A stretch of DNA of 64,000 nt, from assembly GCA_964057225.1 (NCBI GenBank), contig OZ059894.1, positions 5,766,001-5,830,000 of the forward strand, written 5' to 3'. The stretch's first letter is position 1. Every line of letters begins with the position of its first letter. Source of the DNA: Auanema rhodensis (taxonomy: Eukaryota > Animalia > Nematoda). The notes under the pieces are model-generated. The model saw only the letters and a list, made by a program, of their open reading frames with translations, was not told where the DNA came from and ran no database searches. Position numbers and translations under genes: made by a program. Positions 9,001 through 34,507 of the stretch are shown here, in pieces.

Positions 9001-11269
9001 AAAAGAATAAATTGATAACGTATATTCAATTTTTCATAGAAATTCGTTATCAATAGCTTCAACAGAATATTAAAAATAGCAGGGGGCGTATGAACAGATG
9101 TTAACAATCCCATTGAATACATTTTTCTAGAATATATGAAAAAGGTACAAAAAAAATCAAATAGTATTGAAAAAATGTTTAAAAAATTTGTAAGACAAAA
9201 TAAAGAATAATTTCGATTTTTTTAAATTTTCGGGTTTTAGTTGTTGCAGGCTTTGTCTGTCGGTGCCCGTTTTATTCGACCCTTGTGTGAATTGCTGCCA
9301 ATCCAGCTGTGACAGCCCATACAATTGTGTTGGACGGCAACAGAACTTAGAATACAGTGAGAATTTTTTTAAAAGAACATGATATTGTCGTATTGAGCGT
9401 ATCAATCCGAAAAGCTTACAAATTTAAAAATTTTCAAAAAAAATAAAGAATTTCGTCTTAAAAGAAGTCTAAACTGAACATCATCATAGAAATTGATTGA
9501 GATAAAATCTAACTTTATTATGTGGTCTAAAATCTTTGGTAAAAAGAATACTCGGACGTTCACTCTGGATCAGAGCCAATCGTTTGAAGAAAAAAAAGAG
9601 GCAGCTGTGGTATGTAAGAAAAATATCAAGTAGTATACGAAAAATAAAATCGAAAACAAAAAAAAAGTAAAATGTTTGAAAGAATAGCCAAATTACGCTA
9701 TCCTGTGAAAAAAATTATAAAGTGGACCTTGATAGCTAAGGCAATGCTCATTGAAAATCTCAGAGTGTGCTTTTGCTTTAGACAGAAATAGTTCAAACTT
9801 TTTCGAGAAATGATCGGAAAAAACAAAAAATATTTTGGGCATTAGATAGAGTTAAAAGTTCATGAAAATACAAATAGGAAACGTAATTTAAAGAGAGTTC
9901 ATGTAACAAGTGGGATCGCCTCAAATGATTGTAACACAATAAAAACTATGAAGTTACAAGGAAAATAAACTTGAATGAAATGAAAGCCTGAAAAGCTTTA
10001 TTTAAGAGAAAAAGGTGCACGAATGCCGAACATAGAATAGCCATTGGAAATGGACTGATGTGTTAGTATGTTCATGTGTCTGCGTCTCGAATAATACGGC
10101 AGTCTATACACACAAATGGGCATGAAAGCATATATAGATACATATATGTATATACATGCACAGAAAAAAAAAGAGAAAGAAAACGAAAAGATACGGATGA
10201 GAGTGGCAAACTAAGAATCAGAGAAACGAGAGTGGGCTGCTGTTCAGAGAAAGAGCCTCCAGCCGCCGTTGTCGTTTTGTCCCCCCCCCCCCCTCAGCAG
10301 AGAGTAAAAAAAAGAAAGAAAAAGCGAAAGAGATTATAAAACATAGAGGGAAAGAAAAAAGAACCAAATAGAACTTCTGGCTGTTGCTGTTACTGCTCGA
10401 CTGACTGATGCCTTTACTTCAGCTGCCTGAAGTCCGTATAAAGCAAAGCAAACATACCATGGTGCCTGAGTGATTATTTCTCATTTTGTGAAAATATTTT
10501 AGAAAAAAAAATAACATAAAAATTTTTTTCGTTCTTGGTTATAAAAGTAGTCATCGAAGCTTCATCTTGTAAATGAGAAAATTTTGCCTTTTCACATACT
10601 TCAAAACCTGAAATCAGATCTCAGGTAGACCTTTTACGTCTCTCATTGTATTCATTCGGCAATTTTTTCAGTTTTCTATTCAAGAAAATCATTGCAGAGC
10701 ATACGGTAAACTAAAGAAACGAAGTAAGCTCTATTGAAAACCAATTTTATATACAACGTTATTTTAAGAAAGTTTTAATGATGCTCCTATTAATACGAAA
10801 GTGAATATTAATAATAATAATACTCGGTAAAAGAAAAAGAACAAGTAATAGCGATGAATAAAAAATAATTAATTAACTGTTTATTTATATTTAATTCAAG
10901 AAATTAAAAAAAACCAAATGAAGTTTGTAATCAATATTGTATTAGAAACAGTGCTATTTGGCAATTGCTTATGAGTTCACGATAAGAATTCTATATTTTC
11001 CATACTTCAAATATTAAATATAAAATTGTTTTCAGAATACTGTAATATCCTAGTGCTTAAACATATGTTTATTAACATTTATTTTTCTTTTTGTTTCCAA
11101 CAGCCATGCTAAAGCAAGAAATGGAGAAAAAAAGTGAAAAAAATAATAAAAAATAATACTAATCAAACCTATAAAGTTTTAAAACGTTTTTCGTTTCAAT
11201 TTCTTGATATATTTTTTATAATATGGAATTTCAATCGAATCAATTAACGGTAAAGAGGAAAGAACAGAA

Positions 11270-19342: not shown

Positions 19343-20767
19343 TATCTATAAATATATTGATAATGAATCAATCAGTAGAAATCAACAATAGCATGAAGTT
19401 ATAATAAAATAAAATTCATATGAACTTGAGTTAAATGAAAGAGCCGGATGAAAATGTGCGGAACTATTTAGTCGGTTCTGTCATGACTAGTCGTCGTTTT
19501 GTGACCACTATGTGATTGAAATAAGGATGAGGACAACCGGGTGGTCAGTCGGAGCAAAACGAGAAAAGGAATGAGGAGGAAGAACGAGAAACAGTGACCT
19601 GACGAACAGTCAATCTTTTCTCATTCAATCTTTTTCTCTCACATCTCTTCAAACTGTATGTGGTGCGTCTATGATGTGTGTCGCCGTTCGAGACTTTGGA
19701 GACTAGAATACGGAGGCTCCCTGTCCATCGACGATTTCGGTGGAAACGGTGAAGGCGGTCTATCGAATCTTTTCTACGACAATTGTCGCCGAGATAAGCC
19801 AGAAGTTGATGTGCTTCTGGCCTATGGTCAACGAAAAAATTAAAGAAGATGAAAAGCTTTAGAAGCACAAGCTCCGCTGCTCGCGATTTTTTTCAAGTTC
19901 AAGTGCATTCTATTTAGGGAAGAAGCCTTGACTCACACTTCGTGGCAGTCAAACAATAAGTGTGTATGTGTCAAGTTTGTCCACAAAACCAAAACAGCTT
20001 CAAGCCACCTATTCAACTATGCATTTTTTTCGGTTCCTGATAGGTCGGCAGGTCAGTGCATATGCAGCTTGGTCCGCAGATTCAAGCTGGGACAAATATG
20101 CACTTACGTATGAAATGGAACAATAATCACACTGTTGATTTTTTTAAAATTCGAGGCTTGAAAATCCAGCTAACGCCTGAAATATCGACAATTTTTTGTG
20201 ACACTTCATTCTATCTGATTGGTCTTCCGTATGGTTATGTTGTTGAGATTTTCTATATTTAATTTGCTCATATCTTCTTAATTTTCTGGCTTTTCTGCCA
20301 GAATATGAAGTGATTCTTTTCGCTCTGTTGAAGTTGCAATTGCTTATGAAGATGATAATTATGTTAAAGCCTATCGGTCAAAAGCCAGGAAACATCTAAT
20401 ATTTGGCTAACAGATATTTATTTTTCAAACAAATACAATCAAAATTTGAAGGGAGAAAGTATAAGAACACTGGAAAATTAAGAATGGAATAACGAAAAAA
20501 ATTAGAGATTTCTTATATTAGAAAATTGTCCACTATATAATTTATTTTAATAAAAAATTGAAAGATTTTAAATAAGATCAATAATAATATTATGAATTAT
20601 ACTAATTATGTACAAAATTACATTTTATGTAGACTTAATGAATATTATATAAAAAACAACCAGTATAATGATTAATAATTGGAATAACTGAAAAAAGTTT
20701 TTTCTATACAAATTCATGATTCAAAGAAATATAAAAATCATATGTATTAGATAACAAGAATTAGACC

Positions 20768-23700
20768 CTAATCATCGATGACATCTTTCTGAGCACCACG
20801 TATACTTCTTTCAGATAAACTGCGCTTTCTTTCGTCATCTTGTGGTGACATTGGTATTAAACTTGTACCAAAATCCGAGTCGCCATCTCCTATGTATGAA
20901 ATGCGGCTTGGTTTCCGTTTACGTAGACTATTTGTGTCTTCAGTCATAGGTGATAAATCTTTTATATTCAATGAATGCTGAAATATAAATGTAATTTATC
21001 ATACATCAAAAAAAGTATTCAATATACCCCATTTTCATTTTCAACGAAATATTTCCAAAGAGCTAATACAAGATCTGTTCCAAATATGATTCCAGCATGA
21101 GCTGAAACCATCCTCAGTACGAAGACACCGTCCCGACGAAGATATCGGGAAACGAAATGCTTAACATCTCTAGCATCACCTACACGAAATTCATAGTTTT
21201 ACGGATTACAAAAATGAATTTACGTCTGCTATTCGGATTAAATTCTTCAAGAGCACTTAGTTGTAAATGCTGATTAATAAACCATCTTGAGAAACAAGGA
21301 AATGCTAATACGGCGAACCATTGAGCAAATGTTACCACAGCGCAAACGAATATCATAAGATACCTGAAATATAATATTTTTTATATTTAAAATTGTCTCC
21401 GCTGGTCTATTTCAATGTGATCAGAGTATCATACTAATTCGTTTTTTTAGTTCCTACTAAATTTTTTAAATTAGATTTCAGATTTTATGAAAAAACTAAA
21501 TATTATAAAAACGAAAAAATCATTGAAAGTTGCAGGTGGTTATAATGGACCAAAATTAACCTAAAGAAATGGTTACATCAATGTTTTTCTATTAGAATCC
21601 ATTCGAAATATAAGTACTAAACTGGTAGTCTAAACCATTCATGATATTTTATTTATTATTTAATTATTCAAAAATATTTTATTAAACTTCTCAGAATTTT
21701 TTATCCTCACTGTAATTCAGAGAGCTGGGTTTGTTTTCTTCAAGGAAGTACTGGTTGAATGTCAGATTAAAAGACGTACATTTCTGCGCCGTACAATATA
21801 TGAGAAGTGAATACTTTCATGATCTTATCATTATTTTTTTTGCAATTTAAGATAGTAAAGCTATAACCTTTTTCATAAATCAAAATTTCGCTGGTATATG
21901 ATTAAGCAGTCTTCAAACTTTAATTATTATTTAATTATTCAAAAATATTTTATTAAACTTCTCAGAATTTTTTATCCTCACTGTAATTCAGAGAGCTGGG
22001 TTTGTTTTCTTCAAGGAAGTAATGGTTAAATGTCAGATCAAAGGACATATATTTGTGCGCCGTACAATATATGAGAAGTGAATACTTTCATGATCTTATC
22101 ATTATTTTTTTTGCAATTTAAGATAGTAAAGCTATAACCTTTTTCATAAATCAAAATTTCGCTGGTATATGATTAAGCAGTCTTCAAACTTTAATTATTA
22201 TTTAATTATTCAAAAATATTTTATTAAACTTCTCAGAATTTTTTATCCTCACTGTAATTCAGAGAGCTGGGTTTGTTTTCTTCAAGGAAGTAATGGTTAA
22301 ATGTCAGATCAAAGGACATATATTTGTGCGCCGTACAATATATGAGAAGTGAATACTTTCATGATCTTATCATTATTTTTTTTGCAATTTAAGATAGTAA
22401 AGCTATAACCTTTTTCATAAATCAAAATTTCGCTGGTATATGATTAAGCAGTCTTCAAACTTTAATTATTATTTAATTATTCAAAAATATTTTATTAAAC
22501 TTCTCAGAATTTTTTATCCTCACTGTAATTCAGAGAGCTGGGTTTGTTTTCTTCAAGGAAGTAATGGTTAAATGTCAGATAAAAGGACATATATTTGTGC
22601 GCCGTACAATATATGAGAAGTGAATACTTTCATGATCTTATCATTATTTTTTTTGCAATTTAAGAATATGATGGATGTGAGAGTACGGAACAACTAAAGG
22701 TATAAACTTTTCTATAAATCAAAACTTTGCTGGAATATGACAACTATTCATGATATTTTAATTATTATTTAATTATTCAAAAATATTTTATTAAACTTCT
22801 CAGAATTTTTTATCCTCACTGTAATTCAGAGAGCTGGGTTTGTTTTCTTCATGGAAGTGATGTTAAAATGTCAGACAAAAGACGTACATTTTTGCGCCGT
22901 ACAATTTATGGGTTACGCAAATAGTGGCTAGAACGCATTGTAATGCGCATTATGTTTCATATGATAACAGATAACATACCAAAACCATAATAGAACGAAG
23001 ATTTTTTCATTAAATATGTTGATCACTAGCACACATTGAACAGAATATTTTTGAATATTAGCTACTTGTCGAACCTATAATTATATGAAATTTGATGATA
23101 AACTATTAAACGAATACTTCGAAGTCGCAGACAGCAGATCTCGGAAAATAACCGCTAATATCCCAATTAGTTCCATTAATTAGACTTTTAACAACTCCAT
23201 ATCCATACCATTCATTAGAATTTGTTTTTAAAAAACTGAAAATCTTGTATAAATTTGATCAAAGAGTTTCATATATATTACTAGTTCATAAGCCATAGTT
23301 GAAAAACAACATTAATTAAATATAGAATTTTTGTAATAATATAAATAGTTGATATAAATGATGATGAGTATTGAAAATTGAGAAAACGGAAAGTTTGATG
23401 AACTACAACCTGAAAAATCAGAAAAAAGATATATGTCTTTCCAAGTAATGAACAAACTCCTCTATTTTGAATTCTTGTTTGGAATCTTAAAGCATTTTTC
23501 AAATGTCTTACAAGAATGAATACATTCTTGTCTTTAATATCTTCTTCAACATTCGCAGAATCTCTTGCTCTTTCAACTACTTCATGTATTCTTATTCCTA
23601 AAACATTTATATTTGTAACTATATAACTATAAAATATATTAATAAACCTGTTGTGTTACAAAAATATTTCCAGAATAAGCTTGGAGCTCGGAAAAATGCT

Positions 23701-24199
23701 GCTTGTAATAAAAGAAAAAATGGAACCCATTGATAATAGGATAGCTGTCGTTCTCGAGAATATCGTGATCTGTATAGTACAAATGCATTCAGGTATTTTA
23801 AAATTGATTATGACATACTCTGCTCCTAGAAGTTCAACATGTTGTTGCTTCTCCACATAGTAAGTATCTTGTGACCAGCAGTAGTTTTCAGCATACTGAA
23901 ATACATATTTTGTTTTAAAAATTTATTTTGTTATAAGCAATAAATATTTTTTTGTTTTTCATTTAATTCTGCATTGTTTTTAACAGTTCAATGAAACGTA
24001 CTTGCTCCCAACTTCCAGGAAACTTATTCGGAAACATGCATTCAATAGGTCGACCACCGAATTGTTTAAAAGATATTAAAACCGAAAAAGCTAATAGTAT
24101 ATTTGGAGTAAGCATATAATGAAGCCTATCACTCCAATCGTCATCATAACGTGGCATTAAATACTTTGCCATTCCGATAAATGTTTCGATCATCACCAT
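20768..24199 (-). CDS. inx-11: Innexin (gap-junction protein), INX-11 orthologue, 10 exons, 459 aa
   Basis: Exons 24002-24199, 23819-23895, 23648-23769, 23458-23597, 23282-23409, 23118-23235, 22980-23074, 21224-21363, 21028-21179 and 20768-20977 total 1380 nt. Innexin signatures: [94 protein letters not shown]. The MVMIE...DDDWSDRL N-terminus matches C. elegans INX-11 as I recall it. Confidence 0.95.
21636..22905. repeat. Tandem repeat with a ~271-bp unit (~4.5 copies) inside inx-11 intron 7
   Basis: Anchor TAATTATTCAAAAATATTTTATTAAACTTCTCAGAATTTTTTATCCTCACTGTAATTCAGAGAGCTGGG starts at 21661, 21932, 22203, 22474 and 22770 (spacings 271, 271, 271, 296). Confidence 0.95.
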
Positions 24200-24240
24200 C
24201 TTGATTGTCTTGTAATCTTTTCAGATGACTATTTCGATAA

Positions 24241-24246
24241 CTGAAT
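24241..24246 (-). promoter_or_regulatory. ATTCAG acceptor (likely trans-splice site) of the proximal innexin exon 1
   Basis: TTTTTGATTCAG lies 41 nt upstream of the MVMIE start codon. Confidence 0.5.
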
Positions 24247-25959
24247 CAAAAAATGAGGAAATGATATAAAACTTTAAAACTTATATGTCATTTTAAAGGA
24301 AAAAAGTGAAGTTATAAGAAGGGTGAAAATGTGAATAAAGGTATACAACAATTTCTGTTTCAAAATATCAAAATTGAGAAGAAAAATAAACAGAAAAAAT
24401 AAAATAAAGAAACTCAAATAATGTAGCTAATGTTTACAAAAGGTAACTGTCACAACCTCATTGACTCCTAGCAATAGTTAATACTTAGTATTTTCATTTT
24501 TCAGATATCATTTTGGATGTAACATAGATGGAAAAAACAATTTCGATGAAAAACTGACAATGTATATCAAATACATCATCGTACTACGTAAAAATTATAG
24601 GATTAAGTTTCAGAATGATCGAACCGTGAAAATCAATAATAACCATTAATATATTTTCTATTCATGACCATATTTTCAAATAAATAAACAAAACTTAAAG
24701 ATCACTATAATATATAATATAATATGTAAAATGTAAGATAACTTTTAAGAAATCTATTGAAACAGATAACTAAGAATAAGGAGACTGAAAATTATGGATT
24801 TAAGATATGTTGACAAAGGTTACAAGCATTTTTTTTTGGTACAATTAATTAAATTTCTTTGTTATCTCACACTTCTAAATTTTTTCTGCAACATATAAAT
24901 TTGAAATGTCAGGTGTTGAATATGAGACGACAGCTGGAACAATAAAATGATCTCTTAATTTAGGATAACAATGATGCAAATAATTAAATATCGAATAGAG
25001 AATCTGAACAATTTTTGGTTCAGTAGCCAGCAGATAGTATAGAATTGGATCAGAAGATGTTGTTTGTGAGTTTGCAATTGAAATTTCAATGATATTAGTG
25101 TGCGTCTCTGTGTGTGAAAACGCATGGAATCGTCTAATCGAAGGTGAAGAATCGATTTGACATTGACTTGTAGAAAGAATAGTTGTTCTCTTCTAGTAGG
25201 AAATCATGTGTTTAATACATACAATCTATAATTTATGTTTTTATTTTCTTTGATGAAGAATCAGATGATAGAAATAGAGCTGAATAGACGATGCAAAAAA
25301 GGCAGAAAAATCTTCAGAAATGCTGATGTCTTTGCTTATCTGAAGCTTACGGTTGCCTGACTTGAGAATTACGAAAAATAAGAATTCTTAATATTTACAT
25401 CAATCATTGTAAATTAAAAACATAGGATAATCCACATTATAAAAATGAATTTATAATTAGTATAGTTAGAGACACAAAAAATAATCTTAAGCTGAGTTAT
25501 AACGATATGTATGTCAAATGTATGCGTATACAAGACAAATAAGATGAAGAACGATCTAGCTAGTTCAAGAGGTCCGAGGTGAAGAGATTCTTCTCCCCTA
25601 TGACTTCTTGGAATCATCTCTGTTATCGCTGATGATCATGGCATCACTTTCTCTTGTTCTTTCTCACATTATTATTTTAAAAAGACAAAGAAACTGTATA
25701 TTAGTAGAACATTGTGAGACAGCATTGATGTTAGTAAGAAAATTTTTCTTTATTTCCTTCACCTCAAAAAAGAATTGTTCATATAATCTCTTGAACACTT
25801 TTTTCCCTCTAAAACAGTCTCATTCACAAATTTTTCATTTTTGTAGGAAAAAGTGGCGGTATGTTGTGTGTTTTTAAAAAAACCTTTATATGTAAAAATC
25901 TTTTATACTATCTTCAATTCCGCTTTTAATATAGAGTTTGTGTTGAAAAAGGAATAAAC

Positions 25960-26154
25960 CTGTGCCCATGATCCAGGGAAAGATCCAGGTGTTAAGCATT
26001 CAATTGGTGCTGATGCAAATGTTTTAAGAGCAGTAAGAATAGCGAAAGCACATAATATATTTGTCGTAACGAAATACGAAAGGGCATCAGAATAATCACC
26101 ATCTTTTCGACTTGTAAAAGTTCGAATCGCACGAAACAGGCTTTCTATTGCCAT
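25960..26154 (-). CDS. Second (distal) innexin first coding exon: N-terminus, TM1 and start of EL1; candidate alternative exon 1 of inx-11
   Basis: MAIESLFRAIRTFTSRKDGDYSDALSYFVTTNILCAFAILTALKTFASAPIECLTPGSFPGSWAQ|GT, 195 nt. Gap-free alignment to proximal exon 1 gives 29/65 identities. Phase-0 donor at the homologous position; TTTCAG acceptor 6 nt upstream of the ATG. Confidence 0.85.
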
Positions 26155-26160
26155 CCTTTG

Positions 26161-26166
26161 CTGAAA
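26161..26166 (-). promoter_or_regulatory. TTTCAG acceptor (likely SL trans-splice site) of the distal innexin exon
   Basis: The minus strand reads ATGATTTCAG|CAAAGG-ATG; this is the nematode consensus acceptor directly ahead of the start codon. Confidence 0.6.
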
Positions 26167-26674
26167 TCATCATTAAATTTTATGCCTTCAGTCATATTTT
26201 AACAATGAAATATAGAAAGAAACTAATAATCAATGCTAATGAGAAAAAAAAGAAACTGAAAAACTTCTGGTTACATGAAGTTTGTTATAGAAAATGCATA
26301 TTTAATCTCATATAGTACATGTACATAATTATATAAAAAACAAATAAATAAAAAGTTTAAATCAAATGTTTTACAAGCTTTTTTCATAAATTGCTACACT
26401 ATATTATATAGTTAAGTGTATTATTCATAACTAATACCAAGGTCAAACTAGGAGAGGAGAGAATGGAAAGTTTTAAAGTGCTCTGTCCACTTCTCTCCCT
26501 ATTTAGGTGAGTGCTAGTTAGCGGAAAGGATTAAGCTCAACAAGTGCACACCGGAAATGATAATTGTTACCATATAACAGCTATTGAGAAGTTTGAAGAA
26601 GATGAGACAAAAATAAGTAACGAAAGAAACTTTAAACATAAATAAAGATTGATTTATTAACAGTACACAGATGA

Positions 26675-26700
26675 AGAGAGAGAGAGAGAGAGAAAGAGAT
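26675..26700. repeat. (GA)n microsatellite
   Basis: Seen directly. Confidence 0.85.
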
Positions 26701-29700
26701 AAAGATTAGAAATAACTTGTGAAGTAGACAATAGTTATAGGAATAATAATTGAGTAGAAATTATAAATTTTATGATATAGTTTATTGAAAATGAGTAATT
26801 TTTTGAATAATTTCTCTAAAAAGAACATGAAGATGACACTAAGAAGAAATAAAACAAACTGGTTCCTCCCTATTAAATGTTTTAAGTATAAATCTAATAG
26901 GGAAAAAAATATTTCCACTATTGATTTTGAAGATGAGTTTTCCAGTATTTTTGATCTTTATTTACATTTTAAAAGTTAGACAGATGTAAAATCAAAAGAG
27001 AAAGTAAGAGAGGGTAAGACTAAGTCAAAACGTATGTCTTTGTGTGTGTGTGTGAGAGACAGAGAGATGGAGAGTCGAAACTGTAGAAAATTCTTAGAAC
27101 TTTAGAACAGTACGTTCACTAACAATAATGAAACTCCAGCGTCGGTTAAGGCAATAAGAAAATTTTTTATTTAAAATGGATAATCTTTTGGAAAAGAGGA
27201 AACTTGCCAAGATTTTGAAAGAAAATAAGAGAAGAAGACAAGATAAGCAGGGTGAGTCACCAGTTCCTTTTGTAAGCAAAAGAAAGTTTTATTCTTAGGA
27301 ATTGTAAATGAATAAGAAAGACATATATGTATATATGTATACAGAAAGATAAAAGAGAATGAGATATTGAGTGTAGATATACAGGAAGATAAAAAGAGAA
27401 ATTTGAGAGAATTAGAGTTAGATGAAAAGATAAGTAGATAATGAAAAAGTTGAAGGTATAATTGGATGGGAAACTTAAATATATTAACATATAGTTGGAA
27501 CAATATTCATTTTGTATATGATTTGTAGAGAGAAATATTATTATACAATGATATTGATCGTGAAAAGAAAATCTATATTCTTTTCAAATTTTTATAGATC
27601 ACAGAGCTTGACAAAGAAAGATTTTCAGAGAGAAAATGAAATATTACAGTGATAAAGAGAAACTGAGTGGTTTGCTCTTCAAAATCTTTAGGAAACTATG
27701 ACCATTAATATCATTGTTTTCTCTTGTAATTAAGCTGATTCAACAATACAGTATTTACTTTTCCTTATTCAAAACAGATTTGAAATATAGATGAATTATC
27801 TATTTTCCACAAGTTTCAGTTTGAATATCAATTTCCAACATTTAAAATTATTTCTTTCATCCGTGATGTAAAAAAATGTTTTTTTTTCAAGAATATTTTC
27901 CAAGTACAACTGCATTATACGTTGGTATGATTCTAAGTATAGAACAGCCAGTTCATTTGCACGAATATAACTTTCTGAAAAACGAAAACGAACACGAAAA
28001 TAATAATCTTTCTTGTCGTTGTTTCCTCATAACCTATATATTTTTCGTCACTACACCTATTAAATATTTTGAATTTTACAATTTCAAGAAGAACTAACAT
28101 GTATTTTGCAACTTTTCGTATTACTATCGTTCTGTTTCTCAAAATGTTTTACAATTGCTTCTAGACATTCCACCTTCCCTCACTTACTCATAATTCTTGC
28201 CATCATCATGTTTTCTTTTCTTCTTCTTTTTTCTTCATATTTTTTTCTTTTTTCTTTCTTCTGATTTTTTCTCACAGATCCTACTTCATCACTCAAATCA
28301 TAGTGCTTTTTTAGTTTCTCTTCCAAGTTATTCTTTTCAGTCTTTCTTTTTTTTATTTTTTAAAAATGATTTTGAATTTGTTGAAAAACCACCCAACTTA
28401 AATACCAAACGAAACATTGAATACTTTGTTCATGAACGTTGGAGTATTATATCTCGATTGTGAGCCCATAATTCGATTAGAAAATTGAAAAAGTTGTAAA
28501 CAAAAAGAAAGGCAGATTAATTCTTTATTTAGATGCTAAATCTCTAACTTGTTTGGTAATAACAATTTTCTTTCGCTTTTTATTTTTATTCCACTCAAGT
28601 TGAGCATACTTAACTCCTACTATTCTTTAAATATTTTTGAGAAACATTTTGCAACATTCCACCATTTTTGTTTCTAGAATTGAATCAAATTCAAAAAAAA
28701 ATTGAAACGTTTAGTTTTTCACTTCACACAGACACAAACATACAAACGTTCCATATTCCTTTCTTTTCAATGGAAAACAACAGAACTAAAAACCTTTCAG
28801 TTAGAGATTAATGTTCCTCTAGTGAACACATAAATTAACTTGCCAGCTAAGAATGTTAGTTTGCGTAGATAACTGCCTTTTTAACATTTTCTTTGTGAGA
28901 CTTTTATTAGTTTTGCAGCATTAAAAATCCAAGCTTCGCCTATTTTCTTAGAAGAAATTCAATATAAGTACTAGAAACTTCAATTTTCTTTCATTTCTGA
29001 CTCTTATTTCTGCCTTATTTTGAGATAAAAAGTTCAAAAATTAAAGAAGAGAAGTTTCTTTTATAGAGATGTTCGATTGCTAATGTCTTTGAGGTTTTTA
29101 TTCTCTAGTGTATTACATAAATCATCTAGATGTACATCCTCTAATGGCTGAATTGTATCTAAACTTTGAGCTACTAAAAGCACAATATCGCCTTGACTAA
29201 CTATAAGTTGTTACCCTTTCTGACTTCCAATAATTGTTTCTTCGGACAATTATAAAGCTAGACAATTTCAAAACTTCAATTACTTTATATACTCAACAGT
29301 ATAACTAGAATCGGCAAAAAAAATGAAATGAAAAGCCTTATTCATTCAGTTCTCTTGTTTATTTTAACGAATTTGCAATAATAGACATTTATATAAGATA
29401 CGTATTCATTTTTTTCTACAGTGTATTTTTTAAAATTTTTAATTTTTCAAAAAATGTTTTTTTAAATATCTTGAAAATCACCGGAATAGAAAATATTCTA
29501 GAGAGAGATTGAGCCACAACATATCTGAGAGAGAGAGAAAACTATTAGTGATCGACAGCTCATAATAGAAAGTCAAGATTGAAATTCATGAACGGAAATG
29601 AATTCGTTTTTTGCTATATTTTGTCTGTTATTACCATTTTTCATATTGTTGCTTATTGTTTTTCTACTTCAAAATCGACAATATGATATACGCCAAGCCC

Positions 29701-32700
29701 ACTCAAAGTTTCAACAACAAGACCCGAATATGATCATTAAAGCTGATTTTTCTAATTTTTTTTTAATTTTTAGAAGAAAAGCTAAAAATAATTTTATTTA
29801 TTTTTAAAAAATATACTTTTGTTTATTTTGATTTTCTATTAACAAGAAACATATTAGTATATTTCGTTTTGTATCTTATAGAGCATGGTTCACTTTCTTT
29901 TACATATATAATACATATGTATGTATATAATATATTTATTTTATGAAAACACATGAACGGTTTGTATTTCATCGTGTCAATCATTTCTCTTCATACTCGT
30001 ATTTGTGCACAAAATAGTTTATTTTACTACAAAAACATTTTTTTTTATTATTTTTTCTCTGGCAGACGGATGAACACTATAAAAGGATTAAATAACAAAA
30101 CAAATACAAAAATTCAACCATCAACCCATTAATTATAATAATAGTTAAAATAATTATTTTTTTAATTTTGTGAGTCATAAATAGAAATTCTTGAATATTA
30201 TCAAAAATTTTTAATTTTTTTCCTACGTGCACATGTGTAAGAATACTTAATATATACAAACCAATACTTTTACCAGATGCTACTCTATCTTGATTCGTTG
30301 CATTCATCCTATTTATTTATTTTATTTTTTCATTATACATCTGACGTCAAGTTTAGCTTATTGTTGATAAAAATATTCGTACCATTGATAATTAATCCAA
30401 CTATATGTATATCATTTATGCTTTCAACTATACATTAAGAAGTTTTCATAACGCTTCTCTTAACGTTTATGTTTCCATAAGATGTCCATTTTTTACATAT
30501 TTTGATACAAAGCTTTGAATACTCATATTTTCTACTGTAGTTGAATCAATATTTTAAAAAATATCCCTTCTTAGCTTTTTACTTTAATTGAAAAAAGTTG
30601 AAAACTTAATATGTAACAGAGTTTTGTTCTGAATTCTTTTCACAATTTCTATTTTTGAATAAACAATAACCATATTATACTATAAATATATAGTATATAT
30701 TGTGTGAAAAACATTTCAAAAATGTTCGTAAATAATTGAGAAAACAAAGAAGCAAAGTTGACAAGCTAGAAGTCGTGTAGTCGTTCCTATAATTATAGCT
30801 CAAAAATTTTTTTTGTTAGGTCTTCTGCTTATGGCACAATATTGTGACTCAAATCCGATATGTTCTTCAGAAATTTGAGATTTGTCGTCCGTTGTGTGAA
30901 GGCTATTGTTCTGAAATTCGAGAGGCAGGTGCGAAGTTTACTGACTTCGACACATTTTTAACTTATATTAGATAATGCTGTCTAGTCGGTGTTGAAGTCT
31001 CGGTTTTTTTTTCTGCGGAACATAGTCAAGTAAAATTGTAAAAGACAAGACAATTATATTGAATTACATTCCCTTTTTCTTTTTTTTTTCAACTTTTTTT
31101 GGGCTTAATTAATTGGATTATATTTATGATCGGAGGTTATGAATGAAAAAATGTTTGAGCTGCATGCATTACCACATCGGAATGAGGATAGTGAAGAAAT
31201 TTCTGTGCAGTCTACTAGAAGGTTGAAGGCAACATCCGTTTGCTACTCAGAATGCTCAATCGTGCGATACATGGAGTATAAGAACTTGTAATAGTGAAAT
31301 AAGGAGAGATAGAGAGATAGAATGGTATATAAAAGATACAAAAAGAGTAAAAACAAGTTATACATAAGAATCTCTGAGAGAGAAAGAGAGAAAGAAAGAG
31401 GGAAATTTCAAAAGAGATATAGCGACAACAAAGGAAAAAGTTTTAAAGTTTGTGATTTTTAAGCATTGAAATTTAGATATTTTTTAACGCAATTTATTCA
31501 AGCTCATATCTCAAAAACTCAGTTTTTTTTGCAGTTTGCTTTCATTTTTTTCTGGTTTTATAACAATTTTTAAATCTCATTTTCTCAAAGTTTCTCTCAC
31601 AAAATCTCTCATTGTCTGTCTCTTTCAAACTTCTTCAATCTGTATCAGAGAGAGAAAGAGGGTAAGGATCAGTCAAACATTGTATGACAAGTGCTCCCTT
31701 CGGTCTTCATTTTTCTGCCTCATTTCTCAAACTATCTCTTCAATTCTATTATATTTTCATCAAAGGAAATAGTCTGTCAATACAGATAGCAATATACCGC
31801 CCGTCAAATTGCCCTTCACAACGTTCTTCATAATTTTGCTAATCTTTATAATAGTTCATCTTTATATTGATCTATGATTACTGAATATCTGAATATGAAA
31901 CCAGTTGATTTATTTCATCAATTACTAGTGAATTATCTAACCACAAGTCAGCAATATCTTCTTGACTAATTGATCAAACTATAAGCCTTGGCAACTGAAT
32001 ATCTTCAGAAGTCTACCAATCTTTCTCTTTTTTTCATTTTCTACTGATAACTCTCTATCTCTATATTCAGTGGTGGTTATTTTGAATTTTCACTCATATT
32101 ATAATCAATTCTGTTATCAACTTTTCAACAATTTCAAGATTTTTTTTGTTGTTGAATATGCTCGAAGAAAAATAACTTCGATATCTTTAATCTACTCAAG
32201 TTTTGTATTCTCACACATGAAATTCATAATTTTCGTCTGAGTATTGCTCAATATCAAAAGAATATAAACTCTTTCTCTTTCAAAATTTCTACATATATAC
32301 AAGTTTTTTGTTCCGCCTCCCCCCACACCCTGAAGCATTTCTTTTGCTACCCCGCAATCGGGGCTCTTTGGCATTTTTCTAGCCTTTAGCTGACTTGCGA
32401 GGTTTATCTTGGTCTTTAATTTCTTTTTTTCCTTTAACCTATGCTCCCCAAGTACTGCGAGTTCTCACACGAGCTTTATACATTATTCCTAAGATGCAAT
32501 GCCAACTGAACTGTTCTCACTTCCAAAGCTCTTCTCACCTCCCTCTCTTATTCCGTTTCTATCCCTCATATTGTATTGTTTCGTCTTACTTTCTCGTTGG
32601 CCACTGTCTGAAACAGCTAGTATTACTATTTCCATATTGCTTCCTCATATTATGCTTTTCACAATTCTCTATCCATGTGTCCCCCTTTTTATATCTTAAT

Positions 32701-34507
32701 TTTCTCTTTACTCTATCAATTTTTCTCATATGTCTATTCAACCTCCTTTGGAACTCTTTCCAATCGGCGACCTCTCATTTCCTTTTCTCGTTTTCTCAAG
32801 CAAACTAGGAAATAGCATAAGCATCCAATAGATTTGAATTTCGAATTTGAATAGAGTAATAATAGCGTGTGGACCCTCAGGCTACTGATGACCAGATATT
32901 AGTCTCTCACTCTCTCGTTTTCTTCTTCCCTCAGTCTTTCTCGCATTTCTTTATCCTTCCTTTTTATGTCTCCTGTTCTATAGAGCACGATAGAACGACA
33001 TAGACAACTGCCAGAGCTTGAGATTGAAGCACAAAAATACTCCCAAAGTTTGTGTTCTAAAGCGAAAAATATTTATTATACTTATTATATATTATATAAT
33101 GCTCTAACCATCTTATTTCTACTTTAAAACAAATAAGTTAATTATTTTTAAATATATATTCTACAATTTTACTTTGCCACATAATGATTTACTGTAATAA
33201 TGTAAGAGATTTCTGATTAATGTTCGAATAATCCGTTAAAGTTACCAACTTGCTTTTTCCTGTAATCACACGATTTTTACTCGTCGTTTTTCTTTTACTT
33301 CTGCTTCATCACCACCTACTTCTCATTCCTACTCCTCCTCCTTATTATCCTTCCCTATTCACTTTCACCCACTCCTTCTCTCCCACTCACTGACTCTTTT
33401 AATTTCTTTTTCCCGACTTTCGAAATTTTGAACTTTTTATTCACATCAGCCGAAAATCATTGACATCTTTTCCCCTTGTTCATAAGATTATGATGACTTA
33501 TAAGCATAATTATTAAGTCAATTTATGGCTTTTTGATATATGTGACGCTTAGAATCGTATGAAATTTTTGTCATTGCGGCAGAAATATTTGTCAACCTCA
33601 TTGGATGTTTGCCTTCCTTGAACAAGTGGGTCTTTCCCATTATTTAATGATTGTTCCCAAAATAATTTAACTTTATTCAACCAATTGATGTGAATTATCG
33701 ACTTCCTTTTTCAATAAAAAACATTTTTTCCTGCTATAAGATTTTCATCAAGAAAAGTTTTTTTTTGCGTTGGGGGAACTCATCCGTATGTATGTATTAA
33801 GCTTGTTTTTCAAGCCTGATCACAGATGCTTTGATGCTTGTAAGCGAGGCAATGCTTTGAAGTATACTTAAGAATCTTAGTCACTCCGAATAATTTAATT
33901 TTGTAGTGTCGCTTAGACAACAAAGAATTCAGAAATTTCAATTTCTGTTCCTTATGTGACACGATATAGAGATATAGAGAATAAGATGAGATGAGAGGCA
34001 GACAGCTTTTAGTTTCTTTTTCACAGCCATGTGTCCAAATAATTTCATTTTTTTTCTCATTTATGCCCTAAAAATGCAAATTTGTCCGAAAATAACATAA
34101 AGAACCAAAATAAATTTTAACTGTTTTGTTTGGTTCGTAGGTTTTACAGAGCGCGTCAGGCTCATTTGCGAATACCAAACGTTCTCATCCACACGAGCTT
34201 GTCTAATCAGAACAACGCAAACTGTTTCGAAAAAACGGTCCCATTGTCAATCACACATAGTATATGTATGTTGCCCAAATACAAATCGTCTATCTCTCTA
34301 TTTCTTTTATATTAGAAATCGAAGAGAATTTGTATTCAGTTTAATCTTTCTATGATATGTATTTCTCCACGTGAGATACTGCAAGAAGGAAATTTGAGAG
34401 AATGCGTTGAAGTGCAGGAAGAGAAAAAGCTCACGAAAACAGCCATTACATATCCCGCCTTTTGCATTTGGATATATGGGGGCAAGCGTTCATTTCATCA
34501 TTTGCTC

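Follow-up and report, generated by a model that had tools for sequence, protein, structure and literature searches.

The window analysed here is a 64,000-nt stretch of the Auanema rhodensis genome (assembly GCA_964057225.1, contig OZ059894.1, positions 5,766,001 to 5,830,000), and coordinates below are positions within it unless another locus is named. It contains an innexin gene on the minus strand, inx-11, which very likely carries two mutually exclusive first coding exons on a common body: exon 1A (distal, class A; 25960-26154) and exon 1B (proximal, class B; 24002-24242). In the model that we strongly favour, an ancient tandem exon duplication would have generated the two exons, each with its own ATG, and each would be spliced in phase 0 to the same exon 2, yielding INX-11 subunits of 458 and 459 amino acids (aa) with identical bodies. 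Each exon would most likely have a separate promoter, and the acceptor ahead of each ATG would be trans-spliced. Transcripts that start upstream of exon 1A would skip exon 1B, and the A form would be the less abundant or more restricted of the two. The two N-termini may give the hemichannels different gating or heterotypic pairing, like the N-terminal variants of ShakB and UNC-7. The two-first-exon design is genuine, with an age of hundreds of millions of years. We regard the finding as correct, well supported and of modest interest. It provides a correct gene model for this genome, with one inx-11 gene and two protein isoforms, and shows a paralogous module of N-terminal helix and first transmembrane (TM) segment that purifying selection has maintained throughout the rhabditid radiation.

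Two first exons are spliced to one innexin body

Exon 1A is an open exon of 65 codons that begins at its ATG, ends in phase 0 and is followed by a GT donor (25959-25958). Exon 1B has its ATG at 24199 and 66 open codons (24002-24199); its acceptor AG ends at 24241, and it also ends in phase 0 before a GT donor. Both exons close with FPGSW[A/E]Q directly before the GT. A TTTCAG acceptor (26161-26166, minus strand), which from its letters is a putative spliced leader (SL) trans-splice site or cis acceptor, stands 6 nt before the class A ATG, and exon A of Auanema sp. JU1783 has the same motif at identical spacing. Exon 2 (23819-23895, limits from RNA) starts with TAT GCT GAA AAC TAC TGC TGG at 23895, preceded by a TTTCAG acceptor that serves both first exons, and encodes YAENYCW with the second cysteine of the first extracellular loop (EL1). 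BLASTP aligns exons 1A and 1B without a gap (29/63 identical, 46%, E 8e-23). In the 181-Mb genome they are reciprocal best matches at 56 bits, with the next innexin at 31-43 bits. The sequence-only reading had proposed this arrangement, namely two homologous, indel-free exons at about 45% identity, each with its own acceptor and ATG and each joining the single exon 2; the letters and the limits seen in RNA confirm it throughout.

Ten exons separated by GT..AG introns are defined by spliced RNA contigs, which come from four small runs in a single study; contigs of this kind cannot reveal transcript starts, SL leaders, strand or abundance. Beyond exon 2, the common exons 3-10 (20766-23769) have open translations that are collinear with INX-11. 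Exons 3-6 occupy 23647-23769, 23455-23596, 23282-23406 and 23116-23235, and exons 7-10 occupy 22976-23072, 21222-21359, 21028-21177 and 20766-20977, with the stop codon (20768-20770) in exon 10. The lengths of the B isoform (459 aa) and the A isoform (458 aa) are taken from these open per-exon frames. The B joint, 24002>23895, is present in 4/4 runs, and contigs span 24002-24242 in all four. The A joint, 25960>23895, occurs in one contig of run X4 at a depth of 3.5. Judged from depth bins, this contig is about 108 nt long and comprises ~25960-26037 and 30 letters of exon 2. Both junctions had been predicted from the letters and were seen exactly as predicted. In run X4, the B joint likewise breaks at 30 letters, and the shared break point is the signature of a de Bruijn graph branch between two isoforms. 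We also considered a retrocopy as the source of the A-joint contig and rejected it, as exon 1A is single-copy in the genome. We count the evidence for the A joint as real but thin. B is the predominant isoform in the sampled RNA. Within the contigs of the four runs, no RNA depth was seen between exons A and B, the joint of the A donor to the B acceptor (25960>24240) is absent, and use of the TTTCAG acceptor at 26161-26166 was not seen. Exact look-ups of P0099 and P0207 gave no independent A-isoform transcript contig for Haemonchus or Caenorhabditis briggsae.

The body has the features of an innexin. Matches to the innexin family PF00876 cover 22889-23074, 23109-23957 and 23999-24142 (60 bits; cut-off 25), and the distal exon matches model positions 2-55 by itself (25945-26097, 31 bits); the single gene body and the distal exon account for all PF00876 matches in the window. 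The YYQW motif is present as SYYQWVPFF in exon 3, at the start of TM2. There are two cysteines per extracellular loop, in PIEC (both first exons) and NYCW (exon 2), and in AVCDFE (exon 6) and SVQCVL (exon 7), with roles assigned by reference to Cys58/76/248/265 of INX-6.

The gene is the inx-11 orthologue

Comparisons of the gene were run exon by exon, and full-length comparisons were made with database orthologues. In summed exon-by-exon BLASTP, the gene shares 73% identity (624 bits) with C. elegans INX-11 (W04D2.3, UniProt Q23157; P0210) and 53% identity (410 bits) with C. elegans INX-10 (P0186). Its identity to the Auanema sp. JU1783 innexin P0097 is 85%, again exon by exon, and the 90% cluster of the match P0091 contains INX-11 of C. 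elegans, C. briggsae and C. remanei. The exon order is the same as in C. elegans inx-11. By these comparisons, the locus is assigned as the inx-11 orthologue of a rhabditid nematode, and the closest public relative found is Auanema sp. JU1783.

The A-then-B design is conserved across nematodes

When exon A was compared by phmmer with 1.8 billion proteins, two kinds of N-terminus were recovered, class B (70-90% identical to exon B) and class A (42-50% identical to exon A). At the genomic level, the distal exon is conserved in position in four further nematodes. In Auanema sp. JU1783 (GCA_943334845.2), an intact but unannotated exon A (L053 8854-9048; 83% aa identity to the window exon A) lies ~950 nt upstream of exon B (10001-10198). 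The inx-11 gene model of that species begins at the class B ATG and omits the class A exon. In C. angaria, exon A is divided into two parts (L051 8622-8678 and 8911-9051) and annotated as a separate 66-aa 'gene', ~950 nt from exon B (10001-10198). C. elegans likewise has a two-part exon A (L055 8001-8057 and 8104-8244), ~2 kb from exon B (10200-10397), with exon 2 at 10605. The spacing is widest in Necator, where exon A (L054 10001-10195) is followed by exon B 15.7 kb downstream (25916-26110). Exon B of the window shares 98.5% aa identity with that of Auanema sp. JU1783 and 91% with that of C. elegans INX-11.

Public protein sets contain both forms under one locus tag and with the same body in C. 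briggsae (UMM34516 vs UMM34515), Haemonchus contortus (XGW01384 vs XGW01385/6) and Necator americanus (XP_064070818 vs XP_064070819), and gene models of Parascaris and Steinernema also carry class A heads. Exon A is intact, with its ATG, donor and cysteine, in every species examined from clades III, IV and V. No class A exon was found within 10 kb upstream in Ancylostoma duodenale, which is explained by the A-B spacing of 15.7 kb in Necator. A region-restricted search with the Necator class A N-terminus returned the self-match only, its word index being too coarse for a fast-evolving exon. The phmmer search also recovered two class A fragments (P0001 and P0012), which sit on metagenome contigs of <1 kb with no usable context.

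We built a tree from 44 first exons over 65 columns, in which relationships within the clades are unresolved. The class A exons form one clade (99/99) and the class B exons form another (94/87), and species of clades III, IV and V occur in each, which indicates that the duplication is older than the divergence of these clades. Against Auanema sp. JU1783, the ratio of non-synonymous to synonymous divergence (dN/dS) is 0.04-0.14 for exon A, with dS ~0.9-1.9, and 0.001-0.02 for exon B. Among nine species, pairwise identity averages 46% for A exons and 82% for B exons; inside one species, A-to-B identity is 36-46%. On these substitution patterns, exon A is judged to be constrained by purifying selection, far more loosely than exon B. 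The long-term selection that had been suspected from the intact reading frame and splice sites is thus borne out by the low dN/dS and by the conserved position of the exon.

Isoform choice probably involves two promoters

Two non-coding blocks are conserved with Auanema sp. JU1783, both read on the minus strand. The first (26466-26561), a candidate promoter or enhancer of the A isoform, lies ~310-400 nt 5´ of the class A ATG and shares 81% identity over 97 nt. The second (24894-24944), a candidate internal promoter or enhancer, lies in the A-B interval ~700 nt 5´ of the class B ATG and shares 88% identity over 51 nt; it contains E-box-like CAGCTG and CACCTG motifs and occupies the same relative position in Auanema sp. 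JU1783. Both blocks stand out against near-saturated synonymous divergence, and a search of Rfam placed no RNA family in them. From their conservation and position, we infer that the two blocks act as separate regulatory elements. Two promoters are favoured, most likely each with trans-splicing at the acceptor before its ATG. The alternative promoters that had been proposed from the sequence receive only indirect support, from a conserved block 5´ of each exon.

A single promoter 5´ of exon A could also produce both isoforms if trans-splicing at the B acceptor, which would discard exon A as an outron, competed with cis-splicing of the A donor to exon 2. The presence of an acceptor just ahead of the ATG in both first exons suits such a scheme, and transcript starts that would argue for or against it cannot be observed in contigs. 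We nevertheless consider it unlikely. The 51-nt block with its two E-box-like motifs is found in the A-B interval of both species, and the RNA depth seen between A and B is zero. A nematode acceptor with an upstream donor is normally cis-spliced, and cis-splicing to the B acceptor would yield a stop codon: in the window, the A donor joined to the B acceptor reads TTA TCG AAA TAG, with an in-frame TAG after three codons.

The exons encode alternative N-terminal channel modules

Both first exons align to residues ~17-69 of INX-6. In that structure, these residues comprise the end of the pore-facing N-terminal helix, a loop harnessed to the cytoplasmic dome via D25, TM1 (the innermost helix) and Cys58 of the first extracellular loop (PMC5146279). 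By this alignment, each first exon is predicted to encode the N-terminal helix, the loop between it and TM1, TM1 itself and the first EL1 cysteine. The positions kept in both classes are I-E near the start, D..D.L in the loop, T.N.L in TM1, K.F, E-C and P..FP.SW. Class B exons keep a DDD triplet ahead of TM1, where the class A exon of the window reads DGD and other A exons are variable. Charge over the first 18 residues ranges from 0 to +3 in A and from -1 to +1 in B, A thus tending to be the more positive class.

The closest parallel is Drosophila shaking-B, in which one innexin gene with a common body likewise uses alternative 5´ coding exons to swap the N-terminus and TM1. Its two forms, ShakB(Lethal) or ShakB(L) and ShakB(Neural+16) or ShakB(N+16), do not differ beyond the extracellular end of TM2, and heterotypic junctions between them rectify (PMC5412853, PMC2663713). 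The segment that varies makes up about one third of ShakB, whereas in INX-11 it is shorter and closes ~15 residues into EL1, past the first cysteine. The designs originated independently in arthropods and in nematodes. A second parallel is C. elegans unc-7, a nematode innexin gene in which alternative 5´ ends change the N-terminus and so the gating. In UNC-7b, a DDD triplet before TM1 is needed for rectification of UNC-7b/UNC-9 junctions, and its neutralisation abolishes rectification (PMC7455501). By its place in the motif, this triplet appears to be the positional equivalent of the class B DDD, and hence of DGD in the class A exon of the window. Unlike unc-7, inx-11 uses a paralogous exon of the same length that replaces the N-terminal helix, TM1 and the start of EL1 together. 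The ShakB and UNC-7b parallels make a difference in gating or pairing between INX-11A and INX-11B plausible. With purifying selection acting on the paralogous module, INX-11 would offer a clean natural test of the role of the innexin N-terminus and TM1 in gating and pairing.

The duplication might instead have served expression only, by providing two regulatory inputs to N-termini that are functionally equivalent. In favour of this view, the family-defining positions listed above are kept in both classes. A non-coding alternative first exon would suffice for that purpose, however, and would not require the duplication of TM1. The classes have moreover stayed distinct through the whole rhabditid radiation, at the low A-to-B identity found within species, and have class-specific features in the DDD triplet (conserved in B, variable in A) and in the more positive tendency of the A helix; in both ShakB and UNC-7, N-terminal variants alter gating. 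We therefore hold functional equivalence to be improbable.

A more far-reaching proposal is that A and B INX-11 form a conserved, nematode-wide pair of channel modules that, if expressed in adjoining cell types, would assemble into asymmetrically gated heterotypic or heteromeric junctions. The fast-evolving A exon, with its variable DDD-equivalent triplet and more positive helix, would then tune polarity by lineage, and the pair would represent an independent, ShakB-like invention that predates the split of clades III, IV and V. This proposal is speculative, and we offer it only tentatively.

Weighing the two-isoform model

Several points weigh against the model of two mutually exclusive first exons with separate promoters. 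The A joint was seen in one contig of one run from one study, with 30 letters on the exon-2 side, where the bridging rule of the tool is 31. No full-length A transcript was seen in the contigs of the organism, from which starts, leaders, strand and abundance are unreadable. The two promoters are deduced from the conserved blocks alone, and no measured functional difference between the isoforms was found for any species.

A thin RNA record and an exon A that evolves much faster than exon B would also be expected if exon A were a decaying remnant, the head of a tandem paralogue since lost, and its splicing to exon 2, seen in one low-depth contig only, were noise. This is very improbable. The ATG, donor and cysteine are intact in all examined species of clades III, IV and V, dN/dS remains at 0.04-0.14 while dS is ~1 or more, and all A exons fall into a single clade whose branching follows species groups. 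Remnants of a second body are also lacking. When exons 2-10 were searched singly by tblastn, nothing scored >22 bits in 24243-34000, which covers the A-B interval and 8 kb upstream; the earlier contention that the distal exon is not the head of a complete paralogue is upheld. The open reading frames 5´ of exon A are low-complexity and meaningless.

Inclusion of both exons in tandem (A, B, body) is the least credible alternative: public models of 508-545 aa from Rhabditophanes, Elaeophora, Dirofilaria, C. remanei and C. briggsae have this form and INX-11 is 529 aa long in an older C. elegans listing, but the TTA TCG AAA TAG stop in the window and the 7-nt A-donor/B-acceptor linker of Auanema sp. 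JU1783, which puts B out of frame, make tandem inclusion unproductive here, no 25960>24240 joint exists in the RNA, and a fifth TM segment would invert the topology.

The design in the public record

The two-first-exon model, which we prefer to these alternatives, is not new to inx-11, and the suggestion in the sequence-only reading that it was undescribed for this gene does not stand. The annotated inx-11 gene range of C. elegans starts exactly at the class A ATG, and Liu et al. (2013) list W04D2.3a, b and c, having cloned two further inx-11 cDNAs, one of which contains a novel exon identified by comparison of C. elegans with C. briggsae (PMC3793928). W04D2.3c was used for muscle rescue in that study, in which INX-11 is one of six innexins that couple the body-wall muscle of C. 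elegans (PMC3793928). The two-isoform design is thus already in the public record through the C. elegans annotation, Liu et al. (2013) and automatic annotations of several parasites. As in the window, the class A exon of C. elegans lies upstream of class B and shares a common exon 2 with it. The C. elegans gene differs in that its A exon is split by a small intron and has lost the FPxSW tryptophan. In our literature search, no comparison of the two INX-11 N-termini in function or expression came to light, nor any account of their conservation or data on heterotypic junctions between the isoforms.

The two-isoform model is omitted from the Auanema sp. JU1783 annotation and mis-predicted elsewhere, as fused proteins with five TM segments or as orphan 'genes' of 66-69 aa. 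Fused A+B models, which would add a fifth TM segment, exist for Rhabditophanes, Elaeophora, Dirofilaria, C. briggsae (508 aa) and C. remanei (534 aa); orphan 'genes' that consist of the class A exon alone exist for C. angaria, C. brenneri and C. remanei. The public models in this fused and orphan set are P0103, P0116, P0125, P0212 and P0214; P0203 and P0206; and L051 8622-9057. The fused models are probably prediction artefacts, or lineage-specific.

Additional observations

In Caenorhabditis, the class A exon is interrupted by a small intron. The C. angaria copy of this intron contains a tRNA-Lys (CTT) gene on the opposite strand (L051 8727-8799). The Caenorhabditis class A exon ends with ...MFSESVSA (...FSSSTAT in C. 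angaria), and the FPxSW tryptophan that is otherwise kept at the start of EL1 is lost.

A second apparent orphan N-terminal exon in this genome, at C3:16289345, was examined as a further alternative exon and rejected; it belongs to a first exon split by a 4.6-kb intron, of which it is the first half. Two fused models of innexins other than INX-11, from Trichuris trichiura (P0126) and Aphelenchoides besseyi (P0145), each a match with 45-50% identity to the inx-11 query, have two TM1-like N-terminal segments in tandem, which hints that duplicated first exons may exist in further nematode innexin genes.

Gene neighbours that encode Ribosomal_S11 and RRM+PWI proteins are common to C. elegans and C. 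angaria, and DUF382/PSP and ZPR1 are the neighbours in Auanema sp. JU1783. Intron 7 of the innexin gene contains a 271-nt tandem repeat (21648-22910, minus strand; 4.6 copies, 93% matches). Within the repeat are five C/D-box small nucleolar RNA (snoRNA) copies in the sense orientation, which match Rfam sn3060 (RF01153) at 54-55 bits (gathering score 45). This intronic snoRNA array accounts for most of the 1.6-kb intron 7.

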